64,000 nucleotides of DNA, taken from positions 124,001 to 188,000 of the forward strand of contig QPMI01000064.1 in the NCBI GenBank assembly GCA_004431415.1, given 5' to 3'. Below the pieces are notes generated by a model that saw nothing but the letters and a program-made list of their open reading frames with translations, was not told the origin of the DNA and ran no database searches. Positions 9,364 through 59,699 of this stretch are shown here, piece by piece (the first letter of the stretch is position 1; each line of letters starts with the position of its first letter). The translations under genes were made by a program, and so were the position numbers. This DNA is from Cyanophora paradoxa CCMP329. Lineage: Eukaryota > Plantae > Glaucophyta.

Positions 9364-12300
9364 TCAGGCGAAGCCTCTTTCAGGCGAAGCCTCTTTCTCA
9401 AAACCAAAAACCGACGATCCTAATTCCTTTTTTAACCTTTTTTTCCACTCGAGATCCCCCCTGCTAAATAATTTCCGCGTCGCACTGCCTCGAGGACGAA
9501 TTATTAATTCTGCCTCGACACCGACGCGATTGCTCTAGACTACACAGCTGCCCGAACTCCCACACAGCCATTTTTAGCGTCCTGGCTCCCCTAAGACGAC
9601 CGCTCTCCCGTGGACGTCGCGCGAATATCGAATATTCCTCTGGATCAATTCCGATACTTAACCTCCGACAAACGCAGTCCGAGTCAGAAGGTGGGACCCG
9701 GTCCCGCCCGGTCCCGCGACAAAATCGCGCCAGGGACGCCCCAGAACGATACAGAATGACGCGCGAGGGCGAGCGCATCGCCGCAAACCCGATTTCGCGC
9801 GCCGTCGACGCTCCAGTGCGAAGAGTCGGCCGAAAATTTGATCCGGCCGATTCCGGCCGGTCCCGCGACGCGCGCAATCGATGCGTACGGGCGCGCATAG
9901 ACATAGCAGCGCCTGCGCACCCCGAAATCCGCTTTCGGAGCCGGAACAGCGCAGGAACGTACCCGACGGCAAAAATTCGATCCTAGACAGGCCCGGAGAT
10001 CTTTCGGCGCGCCCACGCCGCGGCGCATGCGCGGAACAATAGCATAAGCATTTGAGATGTAGACAGGGCATGCCGCACGCTTTACAGATGCGCCGGGCCG
10101 CGGGGACCCAGCCGACCCCAGAAATTCGATCCTTCACGGACCTGCACATCTTTCCGCGCGCCCTCGCATCCTCACGCGAGCGCATCGCTACAATATTCAG
10201 TTGAGATCTTTTTAAAGCTTTTCGCAAGCTCTGCGGGCGCGACAGGGCACGAGAACCCAGCCGACGCAAAAATTCGATCCTGAACGGGCCTGCACATCTT
10301 TCCGCGCGCCCACGCCGCGGCGCATGCTCAGAGCTATACAATATGCATTTGAGATATAGAAAAAGCCTTTCGCACGCTCTCTAAATGCGCCGGGCCGCGA
10401 GGACCCAGCCGACCCCGAAAATTCGATCCTGGACAGATCTGCGCATCTTTCCGCGCGCCCTCGCATCCTCACGCGAGCTTGAGCGCATCGCTACAATATG
10501 CATTTGAGATCGTTTTAAAGCTTTCCGCGAGCTCTGCGGGCGCGACAGCGCACGACAACCCAGCCGACGCCAAAAATTCGATCCTGGCCACGCCTGCACA
10601 TCTTTCCGCGCGCCCTCGCCTCCGCAACCCCGCACATCGATGCTATATGCATTCGAGATTCTGTTTAAGCGCTTCGCAAGCTCTGTGCATGCGCCTGGCC
10701 GCGAGAACCTCGCCCCTCCCGGGCCTCCTTCCCAACACAGACTACACAGCTGCCCGAACTCCCACACAGCCATTTTCAGCGTCCTGGCTCCCCTAAGACG
10801 ACCGCTCTCCCGTGGGCGTCGCGCGAATATCGAATATTCCTCTGGATCAATTCCGATACTTAACCTCCGACAAACGCAGTCCGAGTCAGAAGGTGGGACC
10901 CGGTCCCGCCCGGTCCCGCGACAAAATCGCGCCAGGGACGCCCCAGAACGATACAGAATGACGCGCGAGGGCGAGCGCATCGCCGCAAACCCGATTTCGC
11001 GCGCCGTCGACGCTCCAGTGCGAAGAGTCGGCCGAAAATTTGATCCGGCCGATTCCGGCCGGTCCCGCGACGCGCGCAATCGATGCGTACGGGCGCGCAT
11101 AGACATAGCAGCGCCTGCGCACCCCCGAAATCCGCTTTTCGGAGCCGGAACAGCGCAGGAACGTACCCGACGGCAAAAATTCGATCCTAGACAGGCCCGG
11201 AGATCTTTCGGCGCGCCCACGCCGCGGCGCATGCGCGGAACAATAGCATAAGCATTTGAGATGTAGACAGGGCATGCCGCACGCTTTACAGATGCGCCGG
11301 GCCGCGGGGACCCAGCCGACCCCAGAAATTCGATCCTTCACGGACCTGCACATCTTTCCGCGCGCCCTCGCATCCTCACGCGAGCGCATCGCTACAATAT
11401 TCAGTTGAGATCTTTTTAAAGCTTTTCGCAAGCTCTGCGGGCGCGACAGGGCACGAGAACCCAGCCGACGCAAAAATTCGATCCTGAACGGGCCTGCACA
11501 TCTTTCCGCGCGCCCACGCCGCGGCGCATGCTCAGAGCTATACAATATGCATTTGAGATATAGAAAAAGCCTTTCGCACGCTCTCTAAATGCGCCGGGCC
11601 GCGAGGACCCAGCCGACCCCGAAAATTCGATCCTGGACAGATCTGCGCATCTTTCCGCGCGCCCTCGCATCCTCACGCGAGCTCGAGCGCATCGCTACAA
11701 TATGCATTTGAGATCGTTTTAAAGCTTTCCGCGAGCTCTGCGGGCGCGACAGCGCACGACAACCCAGCCGACGCCAAAAATTCGATCCTGGCCACGCCTG
11801 CACATCTTTCCGCGCGCCCTCGCCTCCGCAACCCCGCACATCGATGCTATATGCATTCGAGATTCTGTTTAAGCGCTTCGCAAGCTCTGTGCATGCGCCT
11901 GGCCGCGAGAACCTCGCCCCTCCCGGGCCTCCTTCCCAACAATATTATAAAAACAAACTCCTCTCAGTCTAGATCTGCTCCACCCTTTATTTCCTCAGTA
12001 CATTAATATTCCTCTAGCCGGCCAGCGCTAGCTGGACTGGCCGTCATGATCAGCCAGCCAGCTTCCAGCCAGAAAGCTGTTCGCGATCGGCCAGGCCGCT
12101 GGCCACACTGGCCAGTGCCCAGGTGTGCCCTATATATATAGGCCTACTGTGACAGCCGCGAGGGCGTCCGCGAGGCTTCGCCGTACTTAGTGCTCCGCAG
12201 GAGCACGGATCTTGTCTCAAACCCAAAAAGAAACGTGCCAAATTCCTTTTTTAACCTTTTTTTCCACTCGAGATCCCCCCTGCTGAATAATTTCCGTGTC

Positions 12301-14187
12301 CCACCTCCTCGAGGCAGAATTATTAATTCTGCCTCGACACGGACGCGATTGCTGCTGGTAACACAGCCACCCGAACCCCCACAGACCTCTCTAGATCCAT
12401 TTTTAGCGTCCTGGCTCCCCTAAGACGACCGCTCGCCCGTGGGCGTCGCGCGAAAATCGAATTTCCCTCTGGATCAATTCCGATACTTAACCTCCGACAA
12501 ACACAGTCCGAGTCAGAAGGTGGGACCCGGTCCCGCCCGGTCCCGCGACGAAATCGCGCCAGGGACGCCCCAGAACGATACAGAATGACGCACGATCGCG
12601 AGGGCGAGCGCATCGCCGCAAGCTCGATTTCGCGCGCCCTCGACGCTGCAGTCCGAACAGTAGGCCGAAAATTTGATCCTCCCGGTTCCGGCCTGTCCCG
12701 CGACGCGCGCAATCGATGCGTACTGGCGCGCATAGACATAGCAGGGCCTGCGCACCCCCGAAATCCGCTTTCCGGAGCCGAAACAGCGCAGGAAGGTACC
12801 CGACGGCAAAAATTCGATCCTGCACGGGCCCGGACATCTTTCCGCGCGCCCACGCCGCGGCGCATGCGCGGACCGATAAAATAAGCATTTGAGATGTAGA
12901 AGAAGCCTTCCGCAAGCTTCGCAGGTGCGCCGGGCCGCGAGAACCCAGCCCACCCCGAAAATTCGATCCTTGACGGACCTGCACATCTTTCAGCGCCCCC
13001 TCGCATCCTTGCGCATGCGCATCGCAACAATATTCATTTGAGATTTTATCAAAGCCTTCCACAGGCTTCGAAGACGCGAAAGAGCACGAGAACCCAGCCG
13101 ACGGCAAAAATTCGATCCTGCACGGGCCCGGACATCTTTCCGCGCGCCCACGCCGCGGCGCATGCGCGGACCGATAAAATAAGCATTTGAGATGTAGAAG
13201 AAGCCTTCCGCAAGCTTCGCAGGTGCGCCGGGCCGCGAGAATCCAGCCGACCCCGAAAATTCGATCCTTCACGGACCTGCACATCTTTCAGCGCCCCCTC
13301 GCATCCTTGCGCATGCGCATCGCAACAATATTCACTGAGTTCATTTGAGATTGTATCAAAGCCTTCCACAGGCTTCGAAGACGCGAAAGAGCACGAGAAC
13401 CCAGCCGACGGCAAAAATTTGATCCTGGACAGGCCCGGACAGCTTTCCGCGCGCCCACGCCGCGGCGCATGCACGGAACAATAGAATAAGCATTTGAGAT
13501 GTAGGCAAAGCCTTCCGCATGCTTTGCGTACGCGCCGGGCCGCGAGGACCCAGCCGACCCCGAAAATTCGATCCTCGACGGACCTGAACATCTTTCCGCG
13601 TGCCCTCGCATGCTCACGCGAGCGCATCGCTACAATATTCAGTTGAGATCTTTTCAAAGCTTTTCACGAGCTCTGCGGGCGCGACAGGGCACGAGAACGC
13701 AGCCGACGCAAAAATTCGATCCTGAACGGGCCTGCACAGCTTTCCGCGCGCCCTCGCCTCCGCAGCCCTGCACATTGATACTATATGCATTCGAGGTTCT
13801 GTTTAAGCGATTCGCAAGCTCTGCGCATGCGCCTGGCTGCGAGAACCTCGCCCCTCCCGGGCCTCCCCCGCAACAATATATTAATATTAAATTAATCTCC
13901 TCTCAATCTGCTCCACCAGTTTAAAGCAAGCGTTACCGGTCCAACTCCTCCCCTAATTAATTATATATTCCCTCTCCTCATTACATTGCTCTCTGGCCAG
14001 CCAGCTCTCCCTCGAGCTGGCTATAGCGGGCCAGCCCATTGCCAATTGCAAGCCGGCGAAACCCGGCGAAACCCGGCCATGCAGCTGTGCGCGCGGGGCT
14101 GCAGCTGGCCGCCTACGTACTGTGACAGCCGCGAGGGCGTCCGCGAGGCTTCGCCGTACTTAGTGCTCCGCAGGAGCACGGATCTTG
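9364..14187 (+). mobile_element. Non-autonomous Helitron2-like element, family A (outer copy: 9364-9379 plus 12215-14187)
   Basis: 5' TCAGGCGAAGCCTCTT. The 3' end has an inverted copy (gaggcttcgcc), a perfect hairpin GTGCTCC-GCA-GGAGCAC and terminal CTTG at 14184-14187. Inserted between A9363 and T14188 with no TSD. Confidence 0.85.
9380..12214 (+). mobile_element. Non-autonomous Helitron2-like element, family A (inner copy, nested after base 16 of the outer copy; contains a ~1.2-kb internal tandem duplication)
   Basis: Second TCAGGCGAAGCCTCTT at 9380-9395. The same 3' end (hairpin 12190-12206, CTTG 12211-12214) is followed directly by the outer copy's body, tctcaaa... Segment ~9539-10740 is repeated at ~10741-11940. 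Confidence 0.85.
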
Positions 14188-16160
14188 TACGTAGTCTGTG
14201 CTGCCGCCGATGTGCTCGACTATGCCGTACGTTAGCCCTGCCAATTTCGGGCGAAGCCTCTTCGGGCGAAGCCTCTTCGGGCGAAGCCTCTTCCATAGGT
14301 CGATGGTGAACGCCCGATTCTATTTTTTTTCCACTCGAGTCCGATTGGTCCGAGCGTCCAGATTCGCGACCTCCGCAATGAAGGCGAACGGTCTCCGACG
14401 TCAGTCAAACGTTACAGGTACTCGACTGATTTATTTTTGGGCTCGAGGCTCCCCTAAGACGACCGCTCTCCCGTGCGCGTCGTCCGAAAATCGAATTTCT
14501 CTCATGGATCAATTCCGGTATTTATACCCCGGGGCTCGATCGCGAAACCCCAAAAAGTGGGACCCGGTCCCGCGACGAAAGCGCGCCAGGGACGCCCCAG
14601 AGCGGTCAGAATGACAGCCAAGAGCGCGCGCACCGCGGCAAGCTCGATTTCGGCCGCCCTCGACGCTCCAGTCCAGAGAGTCGGCCGCAAATTTGATCCT
14701 GCCGGTCCCTCCCGGTCCCCCGACGCGCGCATTCGATGCGTACTGGCGCGCATAGACATAGCAGGGCCTGCGCACTCCAGATATCCGCTTTTCGGAGCCG
14801 GAACAGCGCAGGAAGGTGCCCGGCGGCGAAAAATCGATCCTGCACAGCCCCGGGCAACTTTCCGCGCGCCCTGGCCGCGGCGCATGCTCGGAACGATAGT
14901 ATAAGCATTTGAGATGTAGAAGAAGCCTTTCGCACGGTCTCTAAATGCGCCGGGCTGCGAGGATCCAGCCGACCCCGAAAATTCGATCCTGGACGGACCT
15001 GCACATCTTTCCGTGCGCCCTCGCGTCCTCACCCATGCCCATCGCTACAGTATTCATTTGAGAGCTTCTTAAAGTCTTTCGCAAGCTCTGTGGCAGCGAA
15101 AGAGCACGAGAACCCAGCCGACGCCAAAATTTCGATCCTGGACAGGCCTGCACATATTTCCGCGCGCCCTCGCCTCTGCAGCCCTGGACATCGATCCTGT
15201 ATGCATTCGACACTCTGTTTAAGCGATTTATAAGCTCTGCGCATGCGCCTGGCCGCGAGAACCTCGCCCGTCCCCTCGACAATCTCCTCTCAATTTCCTC
15301 AGGGCCTCGAGCTCAACTACAGCTAGCTGATTGGCAGCACAACTCCTCCCCTCATTATATATATTCTCTCTCAGCCACAGCAATGTTAATTCTTCCGGCC
15401 AGTCCCACGACTCGCGCAATCGATGCGTACTGGCGCGCACAGACATAGCAGGGCCTGCGCACCCCAGAAATCCGCTTTTCGGAGTCGGAAGAGCGCAGGA
15501 AGGTGCCCAGATCCGGAGGCGAAAATTCGATCCTGCACAACCCCAGCTGCAGGCAACTTTCCGCGCGCCCACGCCGCGGCGCATGCGCCGAACAATAGTA
15601 TAACCATTTGAGATGTAGAAGAAGCCTTCCGCACCCTTTGTAGATGCGCTCGACCGCGAGGACTCAGCAGATCCAGAAATTTGATCCGGACCATGCCCCC
15701 CCCCCCCCCCTTAAACCGAAAAAAAAGCCGAAAAATGGAGAGCCGCAAGCGCGCACAACGAACGATGGCCGCAAGCACGAACGACGAACAAGCACAGCAA
15801 GCCGCACAGCTGCTTCGACGAAGACCTAGTGCAAGCTGCCGCGCCCGTCCGGGAAGTCACTCGAGCCTCGCAGCCTCCCGTCCTCGGTCTTTCCGTGAGC
15901 ACGTCCACATGTTTGACACAGCTACTCATCGTCCAGCTGATGTGCCCCTCGCAGGTCCCCGGCCGGTCCCGTTAACGTTTATGTTAACGTAAGCAGGCCG
16001 CAGCGCGGCCGCGGTCGCAAGCACAGTGCGCAGCTGACTCGCAGCTGTCGTCGATCTTTCTGTGAGCTCGCCCGTGCCTTTGGTTCGCCTGCGCACCACT
16101 GAGCTGATCATCGGATGTGCGCTTCGCAGGCCGATCTTCCCATCTCTGCAGAAGCCGCTC

Positions 16161-17300
16161 CGCTCGTCAGTCGAAGCGGCCGGAACCTGCATCGAATCTC
16201 GTCAGTCGAACCGGCCGGAACCTGCATCGAATCTTCGTGCCCGTGAGCCTCCCGGCCCGCCCGCCACCTCCCTCCCGCCGCCCGCCGATGTCCCCATCTG
16301 TGCGCAGGCCGCCGGCTCCTCACTCGAAGCGGCCGGCGCCTCCATCGAGTCGTTTTCCCCGTGAGCCTCCCGGCCCGCCCCCGCCATCTGCGCCCTCGCC
16401 TGACTGCCGCCCTCTAAGCCTCCCGTCGTCCCTAGCCGCGCTCGTCAGTCGAAGCGGCCGGCACCTCCATCGAGTCGTTTTCCCCGTGAGCCTCCCGGCC
16501 CGCCCCCGCCACCTGCGCTCTCGGCTCACTGCACCTGCGCCCTCGGCTGACTGGCGCCTTCCAGGCCTCCCGTCGTCCCTAGCCTCGTCAGCTCGCCCGC
16601 CCGCCCTGCCCCCCCGCCCCCCGCTGATCTCCCCGCCTGTGCGCAGGCCGCCGCGCTCGTCAGTCGAAGCGGCTGGCGCCTCCATCGAGTCGTTTTCCCC
16701 GTGAGCCTCCCGGCCCACCCCCGCCACCTGCGCCCTCGGCTCACTGCATCTGCGCCCTCGGCTGACAGGCGCCCTCCAGGCCTACCGTCGTCCCTAGCCT
16801 CGTCAGCTCGCCCGCCCGCCCTGCCCTCCCGCCCCCCGCTGATCTCCCCGTCTGTGCGCAGGGCGCCGCGCTCGTCAGTCGAAGCGGCCGGCGCCTCCAT
16901 CGAGTCGTTTTCCCCGTGAGCCTCCCTGCCCGCCCCCTGCGCCCTCGCCTGACTGGCGCCCTCCAAGCCTCCCTTCGTCCCTAGCCGCGCTCGTCAGTCG
17001 AAGCGGCAGGTGCCTCCATCGAGTCGTTTTCCCCGTGAGCCTCCCGGCCCGCCCCCGCCCCCCGCGCCCTCCGCTGACTGGCGCCCTCCAAGCCTCCCGT
17101 CGTCCCTAGCCTCGTCAGCTCGCCCGCCCGCCCTGCCCTCCCGGCCCCCTCTGATTGCTGATCTCCCCGTCTGTGCGCAGGCCGCCGCGCTCGTCAGTCG
17201 AAGCGGCCGGCGCCTCCATCGAGTTGTTTTCCCCGTGAGCCTCCCGGCCCGCCACCGCCCCCCGCGCCCTCCGCTGACTGGCGCCCTCCAGGCCTCCCGT
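16161..17300 (+). repeat. Composite minisatellite inside the Helitron, upstream of the RepHel gene
   Basis: The ~60-bp core cgctcgtcagtcgaagcggccggcgcctccatcgagtcgttttccccgtgagcctccc recurs 7-8 times at ~120- or ~200-215-bp spacing. The intervening modules are related to each other. Confidence 0.85.
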
Positions 17301-18095
17301 CGTCGTTACCGTGTGCCTCTCCATCCCCCACCACAGTCCGCACCCTCAGCCGACAGAAGCTGTCCAGACAGGCCGTTCCCACCATGTCTAGTTCAGAATC
17401 GTCTTCAACAGAGCCACCAAAGCGAAAGAAAGCAGGCAAGTAATTTGCACGCCCGAAATTGCATAGAATTACAGTTGATCCTTTAACCAGGTTTCCATCC
17501 AAACACTGGGAAGCACCAAAGCCATTCTCAGGCACAATTTCAAGCTCCGACTCCAGTGCGCACTGTTTATCATGCATGGAGTTCAATGATGTCCCTAATT
17601 TTGCGCATGTTGCTTGCAGCCGGGTGCAGCACCTGGTAAAGACTATGATACACAATTTCCTCCTTCAGCCGCTGCACTGCGAGTGCGCGCCAGCCGTGCT
17701 CGAGCACGCGGTGAATCACCTCAACCACCAGCACACGTCACACCGCCCAGTACAGGTAAATCAACCCCGTAAAAAGCATGATTCGTGAAATTTATTTCAG
17801 TATCTACAGAATCACAAACGACAAGCCATGCCCAGCGGCAACAACAGTACGCAAAACGAGCACACGGTACTTCACCGATTCCATGAGCTCGAATATTAAT
17901 GCAGTCTATGAACCTCACAAACCGACAGAGCGAGCACACGCAACAACTGGAACATCACCTGGAACCATCGGCTCCACACTGACACAGTTGTGGAAGTGGG
18001 ACCGCTCCGTGGAGAAGCTGTGCAGCAAGATTGCTACGTGCTCCATCACAGCCGCCGTCCCCCAGCACCCAGCGACATCGAAGGAGTCCAGATCG

Positions 18096-21000
18096 ATGGT
18101 GCACATTCCTCAACCGGTGCTCCGGTCGTCAACAGAGATGGGAACGGACGTGGACGCGGCAACTCTGGCATTCATCAGAACGTACTATGAGATCCTCCAG
18201 ACGCAGCCACGGCAAATGTTCCGCTTCTACAACCCTGAGAGCATCCACCTTTGGATCACAGACGAGACGACCCCGATGCCGCAGGCTGCCATCGGGATCA
18301 CGGTGCAAATTTCCATGCATCCAACGGAGACAGTGAAATTGACCCGTTCGCAGAGCATCGAGCAGCGCATCGCCGACCTCATGCTGCATAGGGTCGTTGT
18401 CGACATTGCGGCCATCACGGCCCACAACGTCGCCAACACTTACATCCTCGCCACGATCTCTGGCACCATGTCCCCAACGCCCGATGCCCCTCTGCGCGGA
18501 TTTGTTCAGACCCTTACACTGGCGCCCATCCACGGCGGCATGTACATCGCATCCGATGTCCTCATGTTCCTTCCCATCGACTTGACGTGGCCAGACGTGT
18601 CAGGTGTGTACTCGAAAATTCCAGGATCACGGTTTCTTTGATTGGAATTGAATTAATGATTGTGCTCACAGACCTGTCTACATTGTTTCCGGCAGCGCAC
18701 CCCACATCGGCTGCAAACCAACACATCCTCTCCAGTATCCTGCACGGCAATCCAGAAGGCAAGGCAATTGGCCGGTCAGTCGAACAGCTCTACTTGACCA
18801 GTGGCACACAACATGTGTCCATCACTCATGTTGCCAGCATGCCATCCCCCCAAGGCGGCGCTTCCATCACTGCAATCGGTCTGCAGAAGCACATAAATGG
18901 AGCCTGCGTGCCTTTCGCTGTGAACTGGCATCTGCATTTCAACGTCTTCACTGGCCACTTCTTCATCGATGACATCCAGCTCCACTTCTGGCCCATGCTT
19001 CATGGCTATTCACGAACAGACCTTTACCGATGGCCGTCACTTGCAAGCCTTCCACCGCCAGTCAAACCAGCTTCGCACGCCCAGGCTCCACACGCTGCCA
19101 TTGTCAATGCCCAGCACGTGCAAGAGAGGTGGCCGGCAATAGGTGACACCATCACCATTGGCTCGAAATCAGCAAACAGCACTCCACAGTCGAGTGCATG
19201 GTGTACCATCACAGTTGACAATGTCCGCAACCACCCTGTGACGGAGGATATGCATGACGAGTCACGCTTTGTCCCTGCAACCATTCGTGGCACTCCTGCC
19301 GGTCGTCCCCAGCACAAACTGCCCGACGACCACCGCTGGTTTGGAACAGTCCCAGTCTCCGTCGCCACGACCGCATGCAACTGTGACGATCACATGGCCC
19401 TGCGTAGAGAGCATCATCCAGCATCCAGAAAAAAACTCAAGGAGAAGCAAGCGTCGGTGACGGAGTTCCAAACTCGGGACACACGGCAAGCCGACCGGCG
19501 CCAAGTCCTACGCCAACATGCATCTCCCGAGAAGAAGGATGCCGAGGTTGACCGTGTTCGCAACCTCCGTCATCACAATCCAGATATGGCCTGGAAACGG
19601 CGCGAGGAGAAACGGCAGGCGCGCCTGGAGCGCAAGCTGCAGGACATTGAGAAGCATGCACTCGAGTGGGGCTTCCGCTACGACCACCCGAAGGAGCTCC
19701 TGCGCGACGTGGAGATCGAGATGGCTCGCGCGGCCCCCGAGAAGAAGCCCTTGTTCGAGGCTCTCCGCGACAGCGTTCTTCAGTACATACACAGTGCGCT
19801 GATTGTGTCACACGAATTCAATGCGCATTGACTCATGCATGCGCGCGGCAGCTATGTACCAGCCCATCTTCACGTGCGACTGCTGCTCGATCCGCGACTA
19901 CGTCGATGAGCTGTACACCGTCGACGCAGAGGATTCGTACACGCTTGCGGTGCATGGCATCACGCAGGAACACATCGATCGGATCGCCAAGGACCCTGAG
20001 GACGTCGGCCGCCATCCACGCCTCTGCTCTGCCTGCCACCATTTCCGTGCGAACCCCGAGCAGGGCAAGCCCATCTGTCCCCTTTCGCGCCAGGTGCCCA
20101 TTGTCAGACAAGCACATCCTGCCATCCGAGCTGATTGGCTTCTCTTTCCGCAGAACGGCGTCCACCCCACTCCTCCGTCGCAGAAGCTCGCCGACCTCGC
20201 CCGGGAGCTCACGCTACCGGAGTCCCTCGCCGTCCGCACCGTCGTGCCGTTCGTCCCGCTCTGCAGCTCGCCCGGCAGCGCCCAGGAGGCGGCGCGGGCC
20301 ACTGTCGTCCTCCTCCGTTCCCACCCCCAGCATGTGCTCAACGCTGTCGAGCCCATGCCGCCGAAGAACGTCATGATGTACGTCAACATGCAGAAGCCGA
20401 CGGCGCCGACGGCGGACCCGGAGTTCACGGGCTACTGGAAGTTCGACGTTGACAGAGTGCGCGCGACGATGGACGAGCTCGTCGCAGCTGGCAACAAGTG
20501 GTACATCAAGGCCGGCCTTGACAAGCTCGACGAGGCCTGGTGGTCGAAGTACAAGGCGAACGTCGAGACGTGGAACAGCAGCGTCGACAAGGAGGAGCCC
20601 CGCGAGCCCGCTCCCCACAAGCCCGTCCGCCACCGCAAGAAGCGCGAGCCCAGCGAAGCGCTTGAGTGCGTCGACGTCAGCAAGATCGGCACGGCCCTCG
20701 AGAACATGCAGACAACCGACGATATCGTGGACGACGACTCGGACGCTGGAGAGCCCGATATCGATGAGGACGACTTCGACCTGACGGTTCGCACCGGCGA
20801 CGTGCCGGAGAGCATGGCGGATGTGTTGCGCAACGTGGCAGCTCTGGAACTCGCGCGAGCAAGTGACGGGACCGCCCCGCTGCCATTCGACACACCGGGC
20901 AGCGTAACTGAGCCTGCCGAAGCGCCCGTCAGCGCCGAGTCCGACGAGCCAGCCGAGAAGACGACGCGCACCATCCCCAACCTCGACGAGCGTGCTCGAA

Positions 21001-26440: not shown

Positions 26441-26934
26441 CCCGGTGTGCACCCTCCCCCTCCGTCGCGCGTGAAGCCTGCTGACGGTCTTCTCAGCGCG
26501 TTCCTATCCCTGACGTCCCCCACGTTCACATGTACAGTTGATATCAGCACTTAATTGTACCTCCTGCCCTCTACCCGTCCTCTCACCTAGACGTCCAATG
26601 CATCACATTTCCAGCTATCTCATTCTGCCAATATTTAATACTGCTCTAGGTAGTATTTATAATGTATTCTCCAGGTCGTAAATATAAAAACCCTTCGTAC
26701 TGGAACTGCCCTGCAGGAAATTTTAAACTGCTAGCTGCTATTATATTATATAGCTAGCTGCCCTGCAGGAAAACTGCTCCCCTAATTATATTTCCTCTCA
26801 GCGGCCCTCCCCTCCCCTCTCCCTGCCCTGACACCCCACCGACAACCGCGACGGGCCGCGATGATCAAGGGGGGCGCGAGGTGGGCGGCAGAGGCTTCGC
26901 CCGATGTTTGGGACCCGCAGGGGCCCAGGGCTTG

Positions 26935-32900: not shown

Positions 32901-35900
32901 CTTTCGCACGGTCTCTAATTGCGCCGGGCCGCGAGGACCCAGCCGTCCCCGAAAATTCGATTCTGGACGGACCTGCACATCTTTCCGCGCGCCGTCGTGT
33001 CCCCACGCATGCCCATCGCTACAGTATTCATTTGAGATCTAAACGAAGCCTTTCGCAAGCTCTGTGGCCGCGAAAGAGCACGAGAACCCAGCCGACGCCA
33101 AATATTCGATCCTGGACAGGCCTGCACATATTTCCGCGCGCCCTCGCCTCCGCAGCTCTGGGCATCGATCCTGTATGCATCCGAGATTCTGTTCACGCGA
33201 TTCATAAGCTCTACGCATGCGCCTGCCCGCCGGAACCTCGCCCGTCCCCTCAACACTCTCCCCTTAATTTCCTCAGGGCCTCGAGCTCAACTACAGCTAG
33301 CTGATTGGCAGCACCACTCCTCCCCTCATTATATTCTCCCTCAGCTGAACCAATTCCCCTAATTACAAAATTATATTCTCTCAGGAAATCTCCTCTCATG
33401 CAGGACAACTCCTCCATAATTATATTCCGTCGCAACAGCCCTCCCCTCCCCTCTCCCTCCCCTGCCAGGCCAGCTGATTGGCAGCACCACTCCTCCCCTC
33501 ATTATATTATTCTCAAGCCCTATAATATTCCCTCTCAGCAGCCCTCCCCTCCCCTCTCCCTGCCCCGCCGACCCAGCAACAGCCGCGACGGGCCGCGATG
33601 AACAAGGGGGGCGCGAGGTGGGCCGCTGAGGCTTCGCCCGATGTTTGGGACCCGCAGGGGCCCAGGGCTTGTCCGTTGATCGATGGTGAACGTGCGGAAT
33701 TATTGTTTTTCCACTCGAGTCCGATTGGTCCGAGCGTCGAGGTTGACAACCTCCACAATGAAGGCGAACGGTCTCCGACGTTACATAGCTGAACACAGAC
33801 ATTACACTTATTTTTGGAGTCGTGGCTCCCCTCAAATTCCGTCCGCACTCCTGAGTCCCCGCCCGAAAATCGAATTTCCCTCCAGGATCAATTCCGGTAT
33901 TTATACCCCGAGATTCGATCGCGAAACTCCAAAAAGTGGGACCCGGTCCCGCGACGAAAGCGCGCCAGAGACGCCCCAGAGCGGTCACAATGACAGCAAA
34001 GAGCGCGCGCATTGTGCCAAGCTCGATTTCGGCCGCCGCCGACGCTTCAGCCTCTTCGGGCGAAGCCTCTTCGGGCGAAGCCTCTTCCGTAGGTCGATGG
34101 TGAACGTTTCCATTTGGTCGATGGTGAACGTTTCCATTTATTTTTTTTCCACTCGAGTCCGATTCGTCCGACCGTCCAGATTCGCGACCTCCGCAATGAA
34201 GGCGAACGGTCTCCGACGTGACATAGACGTGACTGGTACCCGGCGCACCGCTCTCCCATCAGTCGGGCGAAGCCTCTTCCGTAGGTCGATGGTGAACGTT
34301 TCCATTTATTTTTTTTCCACTCGAGTCCGATTCGTCCGACCGTCCAGATTCGCGACCTCCGCAATGAAGGCGAACGGTCTCCGACGTGACATAGACGTGA
34401 CTGGTACCCGGCGAACCGCTCTCCCATCAGCGTCGCGCGAAAATCGAATTTCCCTCCAGGATCAATTCCGGTATTTATACCCCGGCTCGATCGCGAAATC
34501 CCAAAAAGTGGGACCCGGTCCCGCGACGAAAGCGCGCCAGGGACGACCCAGAGCGGTCACAATCACACCCAAGAGCACGCGCATCGCGGCAACCTCGATT
34601 TCGGCCGCCCTCGACGCTCCAGTCCAGAGAGTCGGCCGAAATTTTGATCCTGCCGGTCCCTCCCGGTCCAACATCGCGCGCATTCGATGCGTACTGGCGC
34701 GCATAGACATAGCAGGGCCTGCGCACTCCAGATATCCGCTTTTCGGAACCGGAACAGCGCACGAAGGTGCCCGACGTCAAAAATTCGATCCTGCACAGCC
34801 CCGGGCAACTTTCCCCGCGCCGACATCGCGGCGCGTGCGCGCATCAATAGTATATGCATTTGAGATGTAGAAGAAGCCTTCCGCACGGTCTCCAAATGCG
34901 CCGGGCCTCGAGGACCCAGCCGACCCCGAAAATTCGATCCTGGACGGACCTGCCCATCTTTCCGCGCGCCCTCGCGTCCTCACCCATGCCCATCGCTACA
35001 GTATTCATTTGAGATCTAAACGAAGCCTTTCGCAAGCTCTGTGGCCGCGACAGAGCACGAGAACCCAGCCGACGCCAAATTTTCGATCCTGGACAGACCT
35101 GCACATATTTCCGCGCGCCCTTGTCTCTGCAGCCCTGCACATCGATCCTGCATGCATCCGAGAATCTGTTTAAGCGATATATAGGCTGTGCGCATGCGCC
35201 CGGCCGCGAGAATCTCGCCCCTCCCCTCAACGCTCTCCCCTCAATTTCCTCAGGGCCTCGAGCTCAACTACAGCTAGCTGATTGGCAGCACCACTCCTCC
35301 CCTCAAATCTCGAGCTCAACTACAGCTAGCTGATTGGCAGCACCACCCTCCCCTCATTATATTCTCTCTCAGCTGCAGCAATTCCCCTAATTACATAATT
35401 ATATTCTTCAGGACAGCTCCTCTCAGGAAAACTCGATCCTCCCATAATTATATTCCCTCTCAGCAGCCCTCCCCTCCCCTCTCCCTGCCCCACCGACCCA
35501 GCAACAGCCACGACGGGCCGCGATGATAAAGGGGGGCGCGAAGGGGGCGGCAGAGGCTTCGCCCGATGTTTGGGACCCGCAGGGGCGAGAATCTCGCCCC
35601 TCCCCTCAACGCTCTCCCCTCAATTTCCTCAGGGCCTCGAGCTCAACTACAGCTAGCTGATTGGCAGCACCACTCCTCCCCTCAAATCTCGAGCTCAACT
35701 ACAGCTAGCTGATTGGCAGCACCACCCTCCCCTCATTATATTCTCTCTCAGCTGCAGCAATTCCCCTAATTACATAATTATATTCTTCAGGACAGCTCCT
35801 CTCAGGAAAACTCGATCCTCCCATAATTATATTCCCTCTCAGCAGCCCTCCCCTCCCCTCTCCCTGCCCCACCGACCCAGCAACAGCCACGACGGGCCGC

Positions 35901-38900
35901 GATGATAAAGGGGGGCGCGAAGGGGGCGGCAGAGGCTTCGCCCGATGTTTGGGACCCGCAGGGGCCCAGGGCTTGTCCGTTGATCGATGGTGAACGACCG
36001 GAATTATTTTTTGCCGCGATGATAAAGGGGGGCGCGAAGGGGGCGGCAGAGGCTTCGCCCGATGTTTGGGACCCGCAGGGGCGAGAATCTCGCCCCTCCC
36101 CTCAACGCTCTCCCCTCAATTTCCTCAGGGCCTCGAGCTCAACTACAGCTTGCTGATTGGCAGCACCACTCCTCCCCTCAAATCTCGAGCTCAACTACAG
36201 CTAGCTGATTGGCAGCACCACCCTCCCCTCATTATATTCTCTCTCAGCTGCAGCAATTCCCCTAATTACATAATTATATTCTTCAGGACAGCTCCTCTCA
36301 GGAAAACTCGATCCTCCCATAATTATATTCCCTCTCAGCAGCCCTCCCCTCCCCTCTCCCTGCCCCACCGACCCAGCAACAGCCACGACGGGCCGCGATG
36401 ATAAAGGGGGGCGCGAGGTGGGCCGCTGAGGCTTCGCCCGATGTTTGGGACCCGCAGGGGCCCAGGGCTTGTCCGTATGTCAATGGTGAACGACCGGAAT
36501 TATTTTTTTTCCACCGCTCTGCGATTGGTCCGAGCGTCGAGGTTGACAACCTCCACAATGAAGGCGAACGGTCTCCGACGTTACATAGCTGAACACAGAC
36601 ATTACACTTATTTTTGGAGTCGTGGCTCCCCTCAAATTCCGTCCGCACTCCTGAGTCCCCGCCCGAAAATCGAATTTCCCTCCAGGATCAATTCCGCTAT
36701 TTATACCCCGGGGCTCGATCGCGAAACTCCAAAAAGTGGGACCCGGTCCCGCGACGAAAGCGCGCCAGAGACGCCCCAGAGCGGTCACAATCACACCCAA
36801 GAGCGCCGCATTGTGCCAAGCTCGATTTCGGCCGCCGCCGACGCTTCAGTCCAAATAGTCGGCCGAAATTTTGATCCTGCCGGTTCCGGCCGGTCCCCCG
36901 ACGCGCGCATTCGATGCGTACTGGCGCGCATAGACATAGCAAGGCCTGCGCACTCCAGATATCCGCTTTTCGGAGCCGGAAGAGCGCAGGAAGGTGCCCG
37001 ACAGCAAAAATTCGATCCTGCACAGCCCCGGACATCTTTCCGCGCGCCCAGGCCGCGGCGCATGCACGGAACAAAAGTATAAGCATTTGAGATGTAGAAG
37101 AAGCCTTTCGCACGGTCTCTAAATGCGCCGGGCCGCGAGGACCCAGCCGACCCCGAAAATTCGATCCTGGACGGACCTGCACATCTTTCCGCGCGCCATC
37201 GCGTCCTCACCCATGCCCATCGCTACAGTATTCATTTGAGATCTAAACGAACCCTTCCGCAAGCTCTGTGGCCTTGACAGAGCACGAGAACCCAGCCGAC
37301 GCCAAAATTTCGATCCTGGACAGGCCTGCACATATTTTCGCGCGCCCTCGCCTCAGCAGCCCTGGACATCGATCCTGTATGCATTCGAGACTCTATTTAA
37401 GCGCTTTATAAGCTCTGCGCATGCGCCTGGCCGCGAGAAACCTCGCCCATCCCCTCAACAATCTCCTCTCAATTTCCTCAGAACCTCAGGGCCTCGAGCT
37501 CAACTACAGCTAGCTTATTGGCAGCAGCACTCCTCCCCTCATTATATTCTCTCCAACTCCGCCCATAATTATATTCCCTCTCACGAGCCCTCCCCTCCCC
37601 TCTCCTTGCCCCACCGACCCAGCAACAGCCACGACGGGCCGCGATGATTAAGGGGGGCGCGAGGTGGGCCGCTGAGGCTTCGCCCGATGTTTGGGACCCG
37701 CAGGGGCCCAGGGCTTGTCCGTAATCCGAAAACGAACGTGCCCTTTTCCTTTTTTTCCACCGCTCTCCGATTGGTCCGAGCGTCCAGAGGCGCAACCTCC
37801 GCAATGAAGGCGACCGGTCTCCGACGTCAGTTAGGCGAACTTTCGAGCGGCCAACCTCCACTGATTTATTTCTGGACTCGAACCTCCCCTAAAGTTCGTC
37901 TAAGACGACCGCTCTCCCGTGGACGTCGCGCGAAAATCGAATTTCCCTCACGGATCAATTCCGGTACTTATACCCCGGCTCGATCGCGAAACCCCAAAAA
38001 GTGGGACCCGGTCCCGCCCGGTCCCGCGACGAAAGCGCGCCAGGGACGCTCCAGAGCGGTCAGGATGACAGCCAAGACTGCGCGCACCGCGGCAAGCTCG
38101 ATTTCGGCCGCCCTCGATGCTCCAGTCCGAAGAGTCGGCCGAAATTTTGATCCTGCCGGTTCCGGCCGGTCCCACGGCGCGCGCAATCGATGCGTACTGG
38201 CGCGCATAGACTCTGAGACATAGCACGGCCTGCGCACTCCAGATATCCGCTTTTCGGAGCCGGACCAGTGCAGGAAGGTACCCGACAGCAGAAATTCGAT
38301 CCTGCACAGCCCCGGGCAACTTTCCGCGCGCCGACGCCGCGGCGCATGCGCGGAACGATAGTATAAGCATTTGAGATGTAGAAGATAACTTTCGCACGGT
38401 CTCTAAATGCGCCGGGCCGCGAGGACCCAGCCGACCCCGAATATTCGATCCTGGACAGACCTGCACATCTTTCCGCGCGCCCTCGCATCCCCACGCATGC
38501 CCATCGCTACAGTAATCATTTGAGATCTACACGAAGCCTTCCGCAAGCTCTGTGGCCGCGACAGAGCACGAGAACCCAGCCGACGCCAAATTTGCGATCC
38601 TGGACAGGCCTGCACATATTTCCGCGCGCCCTCGCCTCCGCAGCCCTGGACATCGATCCTGTATGCATCCGAGATTCTGTTTAAGCGATTCGCAAGCTCT
38701 GCGCATGCGCCTGGCCGCGAGAACCTCGCCCCTCCCCTTACCAATCTCCTCTCAATTTCCTCAGGGCCTCGAGCTCAACTACAGCTGCAGCTAGCTGATT
38801 GGCGGCACCACTCCTCCCCTCCTAATATTATCTCTCAGCTGCACCAATTCTCCTAATTACAAGATTAATTCTCTCAGGACAGCTCCTCTAGATCTCAGGA

Positions 38901-41900
38901 CAACTCCGCCCATAATTATATTCCCTCTCAGCAGCCCTCCCCTCCCCTCTCCCTGCCCCACCGACCCAGTAACAGCCACGACGGGCCGCGATGAATAAGG
39001 GGGGCGCGAGGGGGGCCGCTGAGGCTTCGCCCGATGTTTGGGACCCGCAGGGGCCCAGGGCTTATCGGGCGAAGCCTCTTCGGGCGAAGCCTCTTCCGTG
39101 GGTCGATGGTGAACGTGCGGAATTATTTTTTCGGGCGAAGCCTCTTCCGTGGGTCGATGGTGAACGTGCGGAATTATTTTTTTTCCACTCGAGTCCGATT
39201 GGTCCGAGCGTCGAAGTTGACAACCTCCGCAATGAAGGCGAACGGTCTCCGACGTTACATAGCTGAACACGGAGTCACGGACATTACACTTATTTTTGGA
39301 GTCGTGGCTCCCCTCAAATTCCGTCCGCACTCCTGGGTCCCCGCCCGAAAATCGAATTTCCCTCCAGGATCAATTCCGGTATTTATACCCCGGGGCTCGA
39401 TCGCGAAACCCCAAAAAGTGGGACCCGGTCCCGCGACGAAAGCGCGCCAGAGACGCCCCAGAGCGGTCACAATCACACCCAAGAGCGCGTGCATCGCGGC
39501 GAGCTCGATTTCAGCCGCCCTTGACGGTCCAGTCCAGAGAGTCGGCCGAAATTTTGATCCACCCGGTTCCGGCCGGTCCCGCGACGCGCGCAATCGATGC
39601 GTTCTCGCGCGCATAGACATAGCAAGGCCTGCGCACTCCAGAAATCCGCTTTTCGGATCCAGGACAGCGCAGGAAGGTGCCCGATGGCAAACAATCGATC
39701 CTGCACAGCCCCGGGCAACTTTCCGCGCGCTCAGGCCACGGCGCATGCGCGGAGCAATAGTATAAGCATTTGAGATGTAGAAGAAGCCTTTCGCACGGTC
39801 TCTAATTGCGCCGGGCCGCGAGGACCCAGCCGTCCCGAAAATTCGATTCTGGACGGACCTGCACATCTTTCCGCGCGCCGTCGTGTCCCACGCATGCCCA
39901 TCGCTACAGTATTCATTTGAGATCTAAACGAAGCCTTTCGCAAGCTCTGTGGCCGCGAAAGAGCACGAGAACCCAGCCGACGCCAAATATTCGATCCTGG
40001 ACAGCCTGCACATATTTCCGCGCGCCCTCGCCTCCGCAGCTCTGGCATCGATCCTGTATGCATCCGAGATTCTGTTCACGCGATTCATAAGCTCTACGCA
40101 TGCGCCTGCCCGCCGGAACCTCGCCCGTCCCTCAACACTCTCCCTTAATTTCCTCAGGGCCTCGAGCTCAACTACAGCTAGCTGATTGGCAGCACCACTC
40201 CTCCCCTCATTATATTCTCCCTCAGCTGAACCAATTCCCCTAATTACAAAATTATATTCTCTCAGGAAATCTCCTCTCATGCAGGACAACTCCTCCCATA
40301 ATTATATTCCGTCGCAACAGCCCTCCCTCCCCTCTCCCTCCCTGCCAGGCCAGCTGATTGGCAGCACCACTCCTCCCCTCATTATATTATTCTCAAGCCC
40401 TATAATATTCCCTCTCAGCAGCCCTCCCCTCCCCTCTCCCTGCCCCGCCGACCCAGCAACAGCCGCGACGGGCCGCGATGAACAAGGGGGGCGCGAGGTG
40501 GGCCGCTGAGGCTTCGCCCGATGTTTGGGACCTCGGGCGAAGCCTCTTCCGTGGGTCGATGGTGAACGTGCGGAATTATTTTTTTTCCACTCGAGTCCGA
40601 TTGGTCCGAGCGTCGAAGTTGACAACCTCCGCAATGAAGGCGAACGGTCTCCGACGTTACATAGCTGAACACGGAGTCACGGACATTACACTTATTTTTG
40701 GAGTCGTGGCTCCCCTCAAATTCCGTCCGCACTCCTGGGTCCCCGCCCGAAAATCGAATTTCCCTCCAGGATCAATTCCGGTATTTATACCCCGGGGCTC
40801 GATCGCGAAACCCCAAAAAGTGGGACCCGGTCCCGCGACGAAAGCGCGCCAGAGACGCCCCAGAGCGGTCACAATCACACCCAAGAGCGCGTGCATCGCG
40901 GCGAGCTCGATTTCAGCCGCCCTTGACGGTCCAGTCCAGAGAGTCGGCCGAAATTTTGATCCACCCGGTTCCGGCCGGTCCCGCGACGCGCGCAATCGAT
41001 GCGTTCTCGCGCGCATAGACATAGCAAGGCCTGCGCACTCCAGAAATCCGCTTTTCGGATCCAGGACAGCGCAGGAAGGTGCCCGATGGCAAACAATCGA
41101 TCCTGCACAGCCCGGGCAACTTTCCGCGCGCTCAGGCCACGGCGCATGCGCGGAGCAATAGTATAAGCATTTGAGATGTAGAAGAAGCCTTTCGCACGGT
41201 CTCTAATTGCGCCGGGCCGCGAGGACCCAGCCGTCCCGAAAATTCGATTCTGGACGGACCTGCACATCTTTCCGCGCGCCGTCGTGTCCCCACGCATGCC
41301 CATCGCTACAGTATTCATTTGAGATCTAAACGAAGCCTTTCGCAAGCTCTGTGGCCGCGAAAGAGCACGAGAACCCAGCCGACGCCAAATATTCGATCCT
41401 GGACAGGCCTGCACATATTTCCGCGCGCCCTCGCCTCCGCAGCTCTGGGCATCGATCCTGTATGCATCCGAGATTCTGTTCACGCGATTCATAAGCTCTA
41501 CGCATGCGCCTGCCCGCCGGAACCTCGCCCGTCCCCTCAACACTCTCCCCTTAATTTCCTCAGGGCCTCGAGCTCAACTACAGCTAGCTGATTGGCAGCA
41601 CCACTCCTCCCCTCATTATATTCTCCCTCAGCTGAACCAATTCCCCTAATTACAAAATTATATTCTCTCAGGAAATCTCCTCTCATGCAGGACAACTCCT
41701 CCCATAATTATATTCCGTCGCAACAGCCCTCCCCTCCCTCTCCCTCCCCTGCCAGGCCAGCTGATTGGCAGCACCACTCCTCCCCTCATTATATTATTCT
41801 CAAGCCCTATAATATTCCCTCTCAGCAGCCCTCCCCTCCCCTCTCCCTGCCCCGCCGACCCAGCAACAGCCGCGACGGGCCGCGATGAACAAGGGGGGCG

Positions 41901-44900
41901 CGAGGTGGGCCGCTGAGGCTTCGCCCGATGTTTGGGACCCGCAGGGGCCCAGGGCTTGTCGGGCGAATCGGGCGAAGCCTCTTCCGTGAGTCGATGGTCG
42001 GGCGAAGCCTCTTCCGTGGGTCGATGGTGAACGTGCGGAATTATTTTTTTCCACTCGAGTCCGATTGGTCCGAGCGTCGAAGTTGACAACCTCCGCAATG
42101 AAGGCGAACGGTCTCCGACGTTACATAGCTGAACACGGACATTACACTTATTTTTGGAGTCGTGGCTCCCCTCAAATTCCGTCCGCACTCCTGGGTCCCC
42201 GCCCGAAAATCGAATTTCCCTCCAGGATCAATTCCGGTATTTATACCCCGGGGCTCGATCGCGAAACCCCAAAAAGTGGGACCCGGTCCCGCGACGAAAG
42301 CGCGCCAGAGACGCCCCAGAGCGGTCACAATCACACCCAAGAGCGCGTGCATCGCGGCGAGCTCGATTTCAGCCGCCCTTGACGGTCCAGTCCAGAGAGT
42401 CGGCCGAAATTTTGATCCACCCGGTTCCGGCCGGTCCCGCGACGCGCGCAATCGATGCGTTCTCGCGCGCATAGACATAGCAAGGCCTGCGCACTCCAGA
42501 AATCCGCTTTTCGGATCCAGGACAGCGCAGGAAGGTGCCCGATGGCAAACAATCGATCCTGCACAGCCCGGGCAACTTTCCGCGCGCTCAGGCCACGGCG
42601 CATGCGCGGAGCAATAGTATAAGCATTTGAGATGTAGAAGAAGCCTTTCGCACGGTCTCTAATTGCGCCGGGCCGCGAGGACCCAGCCGTCCCCGAAAAT
42701 TCGATTCTGGACGGACCTGCACATCTTTCCGCGCGCCGTCGTGTCCCCACGCATGCCCATCGCTACAGTATTCATTTGAGATCTAAACGAAGCCTTTCGC
42801 AAGCTCTGTGGCCGCGAAAGAGCACGAGAACCCAGCCGACGCCAAATATTCGATCCTGGACAGGCCTGCACATATTTCCGCGCGCCCTCGCCTCCGCAGC
42901 TCTGGGCATCGATCCTGTATGCATCCGAGATTCTGTTCACGCGATTCATAAGCTCTACGCATGCGCCTGCCCGCCGGAACCTCGCCCGTCCCCTCAACAC
43001 TCTCCCCTTAATTTCCTCAGGGCCTCGAGCTCAACTACAGCTAGCTGATTGGCAGCACCACTCCTCCCCTCATTATATTCTCCCTCAGCTGAACCAATTC
43101 CCCTAATTACAAAATTATATTCTCTCAGGAAATCTCCTCTCATGCAGGACAACTCCTCCCATAATTATATTCCGTCGCAACAGCCCTCCCCTCCCCTCTC
43201 CCTCCCCTGCCAGGCCAGCTGATTGGCAGCACCACTCCTCCCCTCATTATATTATTCTCAAGCCCTATAATATTCCCTCTCAGCAGCCCTCCCCTCCCCT
43301 CTCCCTGCCCCGCCGACCCAGCAACAGCCGCGACGGGCCGCGATGAACAAGGGGGGCGCGAGGTGGGCCGCTGAGGCTTCGCCCGATGTTTGGGACCCGC
43401 AGGGGCCCAGGGCTTGTCGGGCGAATCGGGCGAAGCCTCTTCCGTGAGTCGATGGTCGGGCGAAGCCTCTTCCGTGGGTCGATGGTGAACGTGCGGAATT
43501 ATTTTTTTTCCACTCGAGTCCGATTGGTCCGAGCGTCGAAGTTGACAACCTCCGCAATGAAGGCGAACGGTCTCCGACGTTACATAGCTGAACACGGACA
43601 TTACACTTATTTTTGGAGTCGTGGCTCCCCTCAAATTCCGTCCGCACTCCTGGGTCCCCGCCCGAAAATCGAATTTCCCTCCAGGATCAATTCCAGTATT
43701 TATACCCCGGGGCTCGATCGCGAAACCCCAAAAAGTGGGACCCGGTCCCGCGACGAAAGCGCGCCAGAGACGCCCAGAGCGGTCACAATCACACCCAAGA
43801 GCGCGTGCATCGCGGCGAGCTCGATTTCAGCCGCCCTTGACGGTCCAGTCCAGAGAGTCGGCCGAAATTTTGATCCACCCGGTTCCGGCCGTCCCGCGAC
43901 GCGCGCAATCGATGCGTTCTCGCGCGCATAGACATAGCAAGGCCTGCGCACTCCAGAAATCCGCTTTTCGGATCCAGGACAGCGCAGGAAGGTGCCCGAT
44001 GGCAAACAATCGATCCTGCACAGCCCCGGGCAACTTTCCGCGCGCTCAGGCCACGGCGCATGCGCGGAGCAATAGTATAAGCATTTGAGATGTAGAAGAA
44101 GCCTTTCGCACGGTCTCTAATTGCGCCGGGCCGCGAGGACCCAGCCGTCCCCGAAAATTCGATTCTGGACGGACCTGCACATCTTTCCGCGCGCCGTCGT
44201 GTCCCCACGCATGCCCATCGCTACAGTATTCATTTGAGATCTAAACGAAGCCTTTCGCAAGCTCTGTGGCCGCGAAAGAGCACGAGAACCCAGCCGACGC
44301 CAAATATTCGATCCTGGACAGGCCTGCACATATTTCCGCGCGCCCTCGCCTCCGCAGCTCTGGGCATCGATCCTGTATGCATCCGAGATTCTGTTCACGC
44401 GATTCATAAGCTCTACGCATGCGCCTGCCCGCCGGAACCTCGCCCGTCCCCTCAACACTCTCCCCTTAATTTCCTCAGGGCCTCGAGCTCAACTACAGCT
44501 AGCTGATTGGCAGCACCACTCCTCCCCTCATTATATTCTCCCTCAGCTGAACCAATTCCCCTAATTACAAAATTATATTCTCTCAGGAAATCTCCTCTCA
44601 TGCAGGACAACTCCTCCCATAATTATATTCCGTCGCAACAGCCCTCCCCTCCCCTCTCCCTCCCCTGCCAGGCCAGCTGATTGGCAGCACCACTCCTCCC
44701 CTCATTATATTATTCTCAAGCCCTATAATATTCCCTCTCAGCAGCCCTCCCCTCCCCTCTCCCTGCCCCGCCGACCCAGCAACAGCCGCGACGGGCCGCG
44801 ATGAACAAGGGGGGCGCGAGGTGGGCCGCTGAGGCTTCGCCCGATGTTTGGGACCCGCAGGGGCCCAGGGCTTGTCCGTATGTCAATGGTGAACGACCGG

Positions 44901-46187
44901 AATTATTTTTTTTCCACCGCTCTGCGATTGGTCCGAGCGTCGAGGTTGACAACCTCCGCAATGAAGGCGAACGGTCTCCGACGTCACTTGGCTCGACACG
45001 GACGTTACACTTATTTTTGGACTCGTAGCTCCCCTCGAATTCAGTCTGGACTCCTGGGTCCCCGCGCGAAAATCAAAATTTCCCTCACAGATCAATTCCG
45101 GTATTTATACCCCGGTTCGATCGCGAAACTCCAAAAAGTGGGACCCGGTCCCGCCCGGTCCCGCGACGAAAGCGCGTCAGGCACAGCCCACAGCGGTCAG
45201 AATGACAGCCAAGAGCGCGCGCATCGCGGCAAGCTCGATTTCGGCCGCCCTCGACGCTCCAGTCCAGAGAGTCGGCCGAAATTTTGATCCTGCCGGTTCC
45301 GTCCGGTCCCACGACGCGCGCAATCGATGCGTGCTCACGCGCATAGACATAGCGCGGCCTGCGCACTCCAGATATCCGCTTTTCGGAGCCGGAAGAGCGC
45401 AGGAAGGTGCCCGACAGCAAAAATTCGATCCTGCACAACCCCAGGCAACTTTCCGCGCGCCCAGGCCGCGGCGCATGCGCGGATCAATAGATTAAGCATT
45501 TGACATGTAGAAGAAGACTTCCGCACGGTCTCTAAATGCGCCGGGCCGCGAGGACCCAGCCGACCCCGAAAATTCGATCCTGGACGCACCTGCACATCCT
45601 TCCGCACGCACTCGCATCCTCACCCACGCCCATCACACAGTATTCATTTCAGATATAAGCGAAGCCTTCCGCAACCTCTCTGGCCGCGACAGAGCACGAG
45701 AACCCAGCCGACGCCAAATTTTCGATCCTGGACAGACCTGCACATATTTCCGCGCGCCCTCGCCTCTGCAGCCCTAGACATCGATCCTGTATGCATCCGA
45801 GATTCTGTTTAAGCGATTCGCAAGCTCTACGCATGCGCCTGGCCGCGAGAACCTGGCCTCTCCCCTCAGCACTCTCCCCTCAATTTCCTCATGATCAGAG
45901 CCTCGAGCTCAACTACAGCTAGCTGATTAGCAGCACCACTCCTCCCCTCATTATATTCTCTCTCATCTGCAGGAATTCCCTTTATCACATAATTATATTC
46001 TCTAAGGACAGCGCCTCTCAGGACAACTCCTCCCATAATTATATTCTCACTCATCAGCCCTCCCCTCCCCTCTCCCTGCCCCACCGACCCAAAGACAGCC
46101 ACGACGGGCCGCGATGATAAAGGGGGACGCGAGGAGGGCCGCTGAGGCTTCGCCCGATGTTTGGGACCCGCAGGGGCCCAGGGCTTG
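26935..46187 (+). mobile_element. Head-to-tail/nested array of ~13 non-autonomous family-B Helitron units (1.25-1.46 kb each)
   Basis: Hairpin+CTTG 3' ends at 28221, 29539, 30987, 32251, 33671, 35975, 36471, 37717, 39064 (CTTA), 41958, 43416, 44874 and 46187. 5' 15-mers occur at 29540, 29555, 32252, 34056, 34071, 34263, 39065, 39080, 39131, 41968, 41998 and elsewhere. All units are in the same orientation. Confidence 0.88.
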
Positions 46188-46397
46188 TCGGAAATCCAGA
46201 TCGGCGACCGAAATTCCTGTAACTTCCAGGTTACGTCCGCCCCACGTGTTTGCCCCGTACTCGTCCTGAATCAATTCACGCACTCACCTCGACGATGACA
46301 TCACGCAACTTTCCATCGACTCTGTCTCATGGATCTAATCTCGAACTTGTACGCTGCAATCTCCAGAGCTGTCATGAATCAATTTCGGTCCTGAAAT

Positions 46398-47090: not shown

Positions 47091-47264
47091 GATCTAGGGG
47101 GGAAATATATATATATATATATATCCCCCTAGATTTCACCTCGAGCTCAAGCTCCACCAACCAATATATATATATTAATATCTCTATCCTCGAGCTCGAG
47201 CTCGACCTCCATCGACCCCGGCCGGTACCAATATATCGCTGCGGTGAATAAGGTGCACGTGCAC

Positions 47265-59660: not shown

Positions 59661-59699
59661 TCTGGCAGCCTGTGAGCTCTGCGAGCCTGTGGTCGATGG

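Follow-up and report, generated by a model that had tools for sequence, protein, structure and literature searches.

Introduction

Helitrons move as single strands via circles that are made by their HUH transposase (PMC5148889). In Fusarium oxysporum, the Helitron2 elements FoHeli1 and FoHeli2 carry 2-5 stacked 5' termini, which have been attributed to self-insertion, and one Metarhizium triple has been described as an element possibly inserted twice into a 5' end (PMC5148889; PMC13342296). Self-insertion is therefore known, and the original prediction for the locus analysed here, which saw no described precedent for its self-homing array, overstated the novelty. What is new is the base-precise site, the intact nests and the nesting of one family (B) within another (C); the targeting mechanism is one that we infer. 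In the literature searched, with most subscription papers outside its scope, we found no report of fixed-site or cross-family Helitron nesting, and no experimental account of how a Helitron2 transposase chooses its target.

Here we analyse a window of 64,000 nucleotides, the whole stretch examined, from Cyanophora paradoxa CCMP329 (GCA_004431415.1, contig QPMI01000064.1, positions 124,001 to 188,000). Positions are those of the window, and the Helitron features lie on its forward strand. We call "head" the first 15 nt (families B and C) or 16 nt (family A) of an element and "body" the remainder. Like FoHeli, which starts with TCAG, the elements have asymmetric inverted repeats, hairpins at both ends and no target duplication. 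They also show the multiple 5' termini of self-inserting FoHeli-type elements, here as 2-3 stacked heads with matching bodies.

Three related Helitron2 families in the window

Judged by their termini and transposase, the elements are of Helitron2 (HLE2) type and fall into three related families, A, B and C. Each carries its own pair of asymmetric inverted repeats, and in all three the 3' repeat is followed by a hairpin and a CTTG end, the Helitron2-type arrangement. As in Helitron2/HLE2 (PMC3627910; PMC11417382) and Helentron/DINE-1 elements (PMC4067079), the 5' repeat is terminal and the 3' repeat lies 21-30 nt from the end, before the hairpin; the T start, the junction T and the internal tandem repeats of non-autonomous copies, which here are 1.25-2.8 kb long with internal 149-bp repeats, are shared with them too. 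The joined ends fold into a 14-15 bp stem that encloses the 3' hairpin, and the termini thus fit the Helitron2 definition (PMC3627910). Note that the 5' hairpins involving the 5' repeat are predicted folds, and weak ones (-2 to -9 kcal/mol). Nested sites are T|T without target duplication; the outer junctions can be read as A|T and G|T or, with the shared T counted as host sequence, as T|A and T|T. The CTTG ends and the inverted repeats rule out a canonical Helitron1, which begins with TC, ends in a hairpin and CTRR, lacks inverted repeats and targets A|T. Rfam and PDB searches gave no matches.

A family B copy encoding the transposase (RepHel), putatively autonomous, spans 14277-26934. RepHel was searched as separate ORF pieces, and these matched Helitron_like_N (E 1.4e-9) and PIF1 (E 7.8e-11) in Pfam; the HUH and two-tyrosine motifs were read in the translations. 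The Rep (HUH) region with its Helitron_like_N match lies at 21783-22739 (HUH motif at about 22173), and the two-tyrosine motif region, the PIF1 helicase and a UvrD_C_2 end follow at 22819-26440 in two frames, with a probable intron at about 25806-25872. The reading frame changes near 22.7 and again near 25.8 kb, in both places at a plausible short intron. Upstream, an ORF at 19803-21323 gave no direct Pfam match but is homologous to the N-terminal part of HLE2 transposases that bears DUF6570. Its stretch 19851-20480 could be aligned with the DUF6570 region of one homologue, P0004 (E 7e-12), and this domain, a reported HLE2 marker (PMC11417382), is found in several of the closest homologues. 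No Pfam match to an apurinic endonuclease domain was obtained in the RepHel ORF pieces searched, so these elements are not Helentrons in the narrow sense. The best protein match and two more among the top ten are Cyanophora paradoxa proteins, with 36-53% identity. An exact-protein look-up with the window ORF and two Cyanophora proteins gave no contigs, and neither clear termini nor stacks were seen in contigs that carry distant homologues. The large B copy also carries, upstream of RepHel, an ORF with an NTF2-like domain (17778-18641; PF02136, E 5e-10); one or possibly more such ORFs lie within 17778-19831.

Other features accompany the Helitrons. At 51383-51409 and 61840-61870, a hairpin plus CTTG is followed by T, with no upstream inverted-repeat partner found; these are possibly other Helitron ends, or chance. 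A 675-aa ORF on the reverse strand (48927-50954) has a weak RNase H match (E 0.001) and is probably a retroelement or DDE remnant. A 40-nt inverted repeat (95%; 55414-55453 and 60501-60540) bounds about 5.1 kb containing a 159-bp tandem repeat (56106-56562); the flanks of this 55414-60540 stretch rejoin a sequence duplicated at 61145-61604, which suggests a TIR element that has an empty site close by.

Families A and B are nested at a fixed base inside the 5' end

In family A, an outer copy is interrupted by an inner one. The outer head (9364-9379) consists of 16 nt, a 14-nt 5' asymmetric inverted repeat with a GAA mini-hairpin, plus TT; it is followed by a complete non-autonomous copy (9380-12214) with an internal 1.2-kb tandem duplication (99.6%), and the outer body then resumes at base 17 and runs to its CTTG end (12215-14187). 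The two heads (9364 and 9380) are thus matched by two ends (12214 and 14187), and the inner copy entered a T|TCTC target at base 16|17. The A and C insertions lie 44 bp apart in the same orientation, and the spacer (14188-14231) has no homology elsewhere in the window. A fourth element around the outer A site, proposed from a 12-nt inverted match (60799/61115), was rejected: no hairpin-CTTG end follows it.

Family B repeats this architecture on a larger scale. At its 3' end, the head recurs in inverted form and is followed by a hairpin and CTTG. Block 1 opens with two stacked 15-nt heads (14247-14276), which belong to bodies b2 and b3; the RepHel-encoding copy is innermost, and the headless bodies b2 (26935-28221) and b3 (28222-29539) follow, both from base 16. 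Three heads (14247, 14262 and 14277) therefore face three ends (26934, 28221 and 29539). Block 2 (29540-32251) has two heads (29540 and 29555) and two ends (30987 and 32251), for the inner copy b4 (29555-30987) and the headless b5 (30988-32251). Every start, end and headless body originally predicted for A and B was confirmed at its coordinate, as was the balance of starts and ends in these three blocks (2/2, 3/3 and 2/2).

Beyond block 2 the array becomes less regular. The segment 32252-34049 holds a complete young copy, b6 (32252-33671), and the headless b7, which has no spare head and is truncated by a deletion at about 34050. Block 3 (34050-39064) comprises a partial head plus two heads, the rearranged b8 with internal duplications, and the headless b9 and b10, the latter with a CTTA end. 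In block 4 (39065-46187), an outer head and the headless b15 surround the near-identical b11-b14 (99.4-100%), with extra heads of 51, 30 and 9 nt. The count had been expected to break after 32251 through deletions and duplications. It does break later, as foreseen; the first failure, at 33672 (one head for the two bodies b6 and b7), lies however upstream of the microhomology deletion at about 34050, and no visible deletion accounts for the missing b7 head. In block 3, fresh internal duplications of 379 and 496 bp (98-100%; 35206-36508) terminate within the 3' hairpin, and at 35976-36082 a 37-nt headless stub is fused to a 3' end.

All 14 complete B ends are directly followed by TCCG or TCGG, as originally reported; 13 end in CTTG and one in CTTA (39064). 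What follows is a headless body in eight cases, a new head in five (two of them 9-nt stubs) and other sequence in one (46187). The headless bodies start exactly at element base 16 (8/8). Bodies b1-b5, b8-b10 and b15 are 85-92% identical to one another, and only b6 and b11-b14 reach 99-100%; the b13 and b14 units (99.93%) resemble the products of a tandem duplication. At 85-92% identity, neighbouring bodies come from different templates and represent separate insertions, which excludes a single rolling-circle concatemer. The central claim of the original prediction, that repeated base-precise insertion just inside the 5' end built a nested array, is thus borne out.

Not all heads fit this scheme. 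The head duplications of 9 nt (41959/43417), 30 nt (41968/43426) and 51 nt (39080) all start at base 1 and have no matching orphan body, and those of 9 and 30 nt are not at T|T. The spans concerned (39080-39130, 41959-41997 and 43417-43455) are candidates for abortive restart at a nick.

The B array is inserted in a family C element

A 15-nt head of a third family, which the original prediction had overlooked, directly precedes the B array (14232-14246). Its first 14 nt pair at 13 of 14 positions with a repeat at 47670-47683, where 0.04 such matches are expected by chance; the terminal repeats of C and B agree at 4 of 14 bases. The C body occupies 46188-47704, beginning with base 16, and contains a core (46399-47090; 82-86% identical to A/B over about 690 nt), the 3' inverted repeat, a hairpin with a 6-bp stem (47684-47699) and the CTTG end at 47704. 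Head and body together are a single 1532-bp family C element, and the repeat pairing, the hairpin and the CTTG end place the 32-kb B array as a nest at C base 15|16. A GC-rich 40-bp repeat in family C (47268-47604) has an inverted counterpart 11 kb downstream, a 20/40-bp array (58785-59660) to which it is 66-68% similar.

This changes how the ends of the array are read. Removal of the B array had been noted to rejoin 14246|46188 with the same T|TCSG motif, which could pass for an independent example in host DNA. The junction is real; the sequence that it restores is not host DNA, being base 15|16 of family C, the same head position that is used in B. The homing is consequently not strictly of the self type that had been proposed, since B inserted at a C head. 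Cross-family use of the head site amounts to one event.

An account with no targeted insertion would have heads arise by slippage or abortive restart, and headless bodies from circles that are nicked at base 16 and enter arrays by recombination or read through them. It has its attractions: the 9-, 30- and 51-nt heads begin at base 1 with no orphan bodies, b7 has no head, b6 and b11-b14 are 99-100% identical, and the head duplications of Fusarium vary in length too (31, 65, 73 and 85 nt). It leaves unexplained, however, how B came to stand between a C head and a C body, an arrangement that requires true insertion and that slippage, an alternative start or read-through cannot produce. Under this account head and body counts would also be unrelated, but three of the four countable blocks balance, and most neighbours are 8-15% diverged. 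We therefore regard it as improbable for the array as a whole; a slippage, restart or circle process probably contributed to block 4 and to b7.

Insertion follows T|TC next to the left terminal repeat

The targets in A, B and C share T|TC directly 3' of the 14-nt left terminal repeat, between bases 15 and 16 in B and C, and one base later in A (16|17). The cut tracks T|TC and not a fixed distance, and T|TC is chosen over the adjacent T|TT in A and C. The outer sites, which have no recognisable surrounding element, read CATA|TACG (A) and TACG|TTTA (C) and have the junction T alone in common.

In the original prediction, a preference for a short T|TC(C/G)G target that looks like the 5' terminus of the element itself was taken to be sufficient, and a TCCG or TCGG does stand after every B end. 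Each of these is nevertheless a B or C head position and gives no independent support for the motif. On the top strand, a 1.3-2 kb element contains TTC 20-44 times and TTC(C/G)G 8-12 times, and the head site alone was used; the chance that eight events all fall on one of 8-12 equal sites is about 2e-8. The inner copy of family A used T|TCTC, and TCSG is absent from the two outer sites, A|TACG and G|TTTA, which belong to families A and C with no solitary B site among them. The short motif is thus contradicted within the window, and it is most unlikely to be enough.

A longer motif, GCC-NN-T(T)|TC, could mediate recognition by sequence: it is rare and fits the targets of A, B and C, though it was derived post hoc from these three sites. 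With such a consensus in the heads, a pure sequence preference would need just copy number and the tolerance of repeats to insertions, and reuse of a preferred site is a published route to tandem transposons in Drosophila (PMC5932611). Each B element contains the motif once or twice, and flanking DNA about once every 1.9 kb. Against this reading, a second match near base 430, present in five of seven short B bodies, was never used here, and the motif is not matched at the outer site of either A or C. We consider pure sequence preference rather unlikely, if a more serious contender than the short motif. A hairpin over the target site was rejected as a discriminator: the fold is predicted for C and for five of seven B targets, yet for inner copies as well, and not for A or b10.

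The array in sequencing runs

Parts of the array were present in 20 runs, all as short-read contigs. The b4 head region was recovered exactly or nearly so (0-1 differences) in contigs of three runs. For 29380-29720, the short-read contigs of four runs revealed a high-copy family, with no spanning contig and no usable flank logo. A collapsed or mis-joined repeat would be consistent with this last result and with block 4 units that are up to 100% identical. However, ten bodies are distinct at 85-92%, the junctions are base-precise, the C repeat pair closes across 33 kb and the b4 head region recurs in those three runs, so that an assembly artefact is extremely unlikely.

One diverged contig carries an end-to-single-head junction from another locus. 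In run X17, a loose end resembles the start of the C body (23/30) and hints at further B-in-C junctions; this end is, however, the consensus of two contigs, in which the present locus may be represented. No metagenome contig matched the pattern of the B 3' end. Matches of the 16-mer head were single, with no body homology, and were treated as chance; contig L033, labelled human-gut metagenome, was excluded from the comparisons.

Discussion

The insertions share a fixed position, leave no duplication, come from distinct donors and include one cross-family event. Overall, these observations are probably best explained if each new copy is attached at the first T|TC that follows the left terminal repeat of a resident copy, with the resident left end as the landing site. 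That this end serves the transposase as a landing site is the most likely reason for the fixed position, and we would give it about an even chance. Three points count against the account: cross-family use is known from one event, b7 has no head, and the 9-, 30- and 51-nt heads have no orphan bodies.

We propose the following sequence of events. RepHel would engage the resident left end, or the terminal repeat would be occupied by pairing or protein, and the first accessible T|TC beyond it would accept the incoming, RepHel-linked strand. As the newcomer begins with TC, its insertion would rebuild the site, and the newcomer would bring another such site with it. A further insertion behind the newcomer's head would give stacked heads, and one in front of it would give head-to-tail blocks within the nest. 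Since all head-to-tail junctions in the window fall inside the C nest, one rule would cover both junction types. The 9-, 30- and 51-nt heads would call for a second process, either abortive restart at a nick or later loss of the body, and the outcome would resemble the variable heads of Fusarium. Local duplication, deletion and abortive head duplication would then blur the count of heads and bodies.

How might the left end be found? IS200/IS605 target selection provides an analogue that is guided by base pairing. By this analogy, the incoming 3' inverted repeat would pair in trans with the resident 5' repeat and so position the cut, and the B stack unit does equal the 14-15 bp stem of the folded joined ends. 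The same position was used in C, however, where the repeats match at 4 of 14 bases, and we give such a guide very little credence. More tentatively than we hold the landing site itself, we suggest that the HLE2 transposase may recognise the left end of any related Helitron2, whatever the sequence of its terminal repeat, and join to the first T|TC beyond. If so, most new insertions would enter existing elements, in a self-renewing safe harbour common to the families, and satellite-like arrays would grow through insertion alone.

A fixed landing site beside the resident left end, used across families, is a precise substrate for target-capture tests and could yield a site-selective HUH integrase. 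It would open a path on which dispersed Helitrons turn into satellite-like arrays by nothing but insertion, and would support the self-insertion model for Fusarium, which was proposed there from partial remains. For annotation, the 1.3-1.5 kb "satellites" here are nests, and stack size only approximates the number of insertions.

Several known systems share parts of this behaviour. The Paramecium telomeric Helitrons (PMC13085455) also show apparently site-specific, oriented and recurrent insertion and form large compartments, but they target the telomeric repeat, belong to a third clade and do not self-nest at a fixed base. In the double-insertion tandems of Drosophila (PMC5932611), a site preference likewise generates tandem copies that can expand to satellite-like arrays; there, cut-and-paste and retro-elements reuse a duplicated host target, whereas here the target lies inside the element and is not duplicated. 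Helitron2/HLE2 elements have been described as targeting a simple TT (or T|C), with no positional preference for resident left ends. In FoHeli, finally, the duplicated heads vary in length (31, 65, 73 and 85 nt), usually one 3' end is left and no fixed site has been described, while the array analysed here has a base-precise site, intact orphan bodies, CTTG ends and one family within another.
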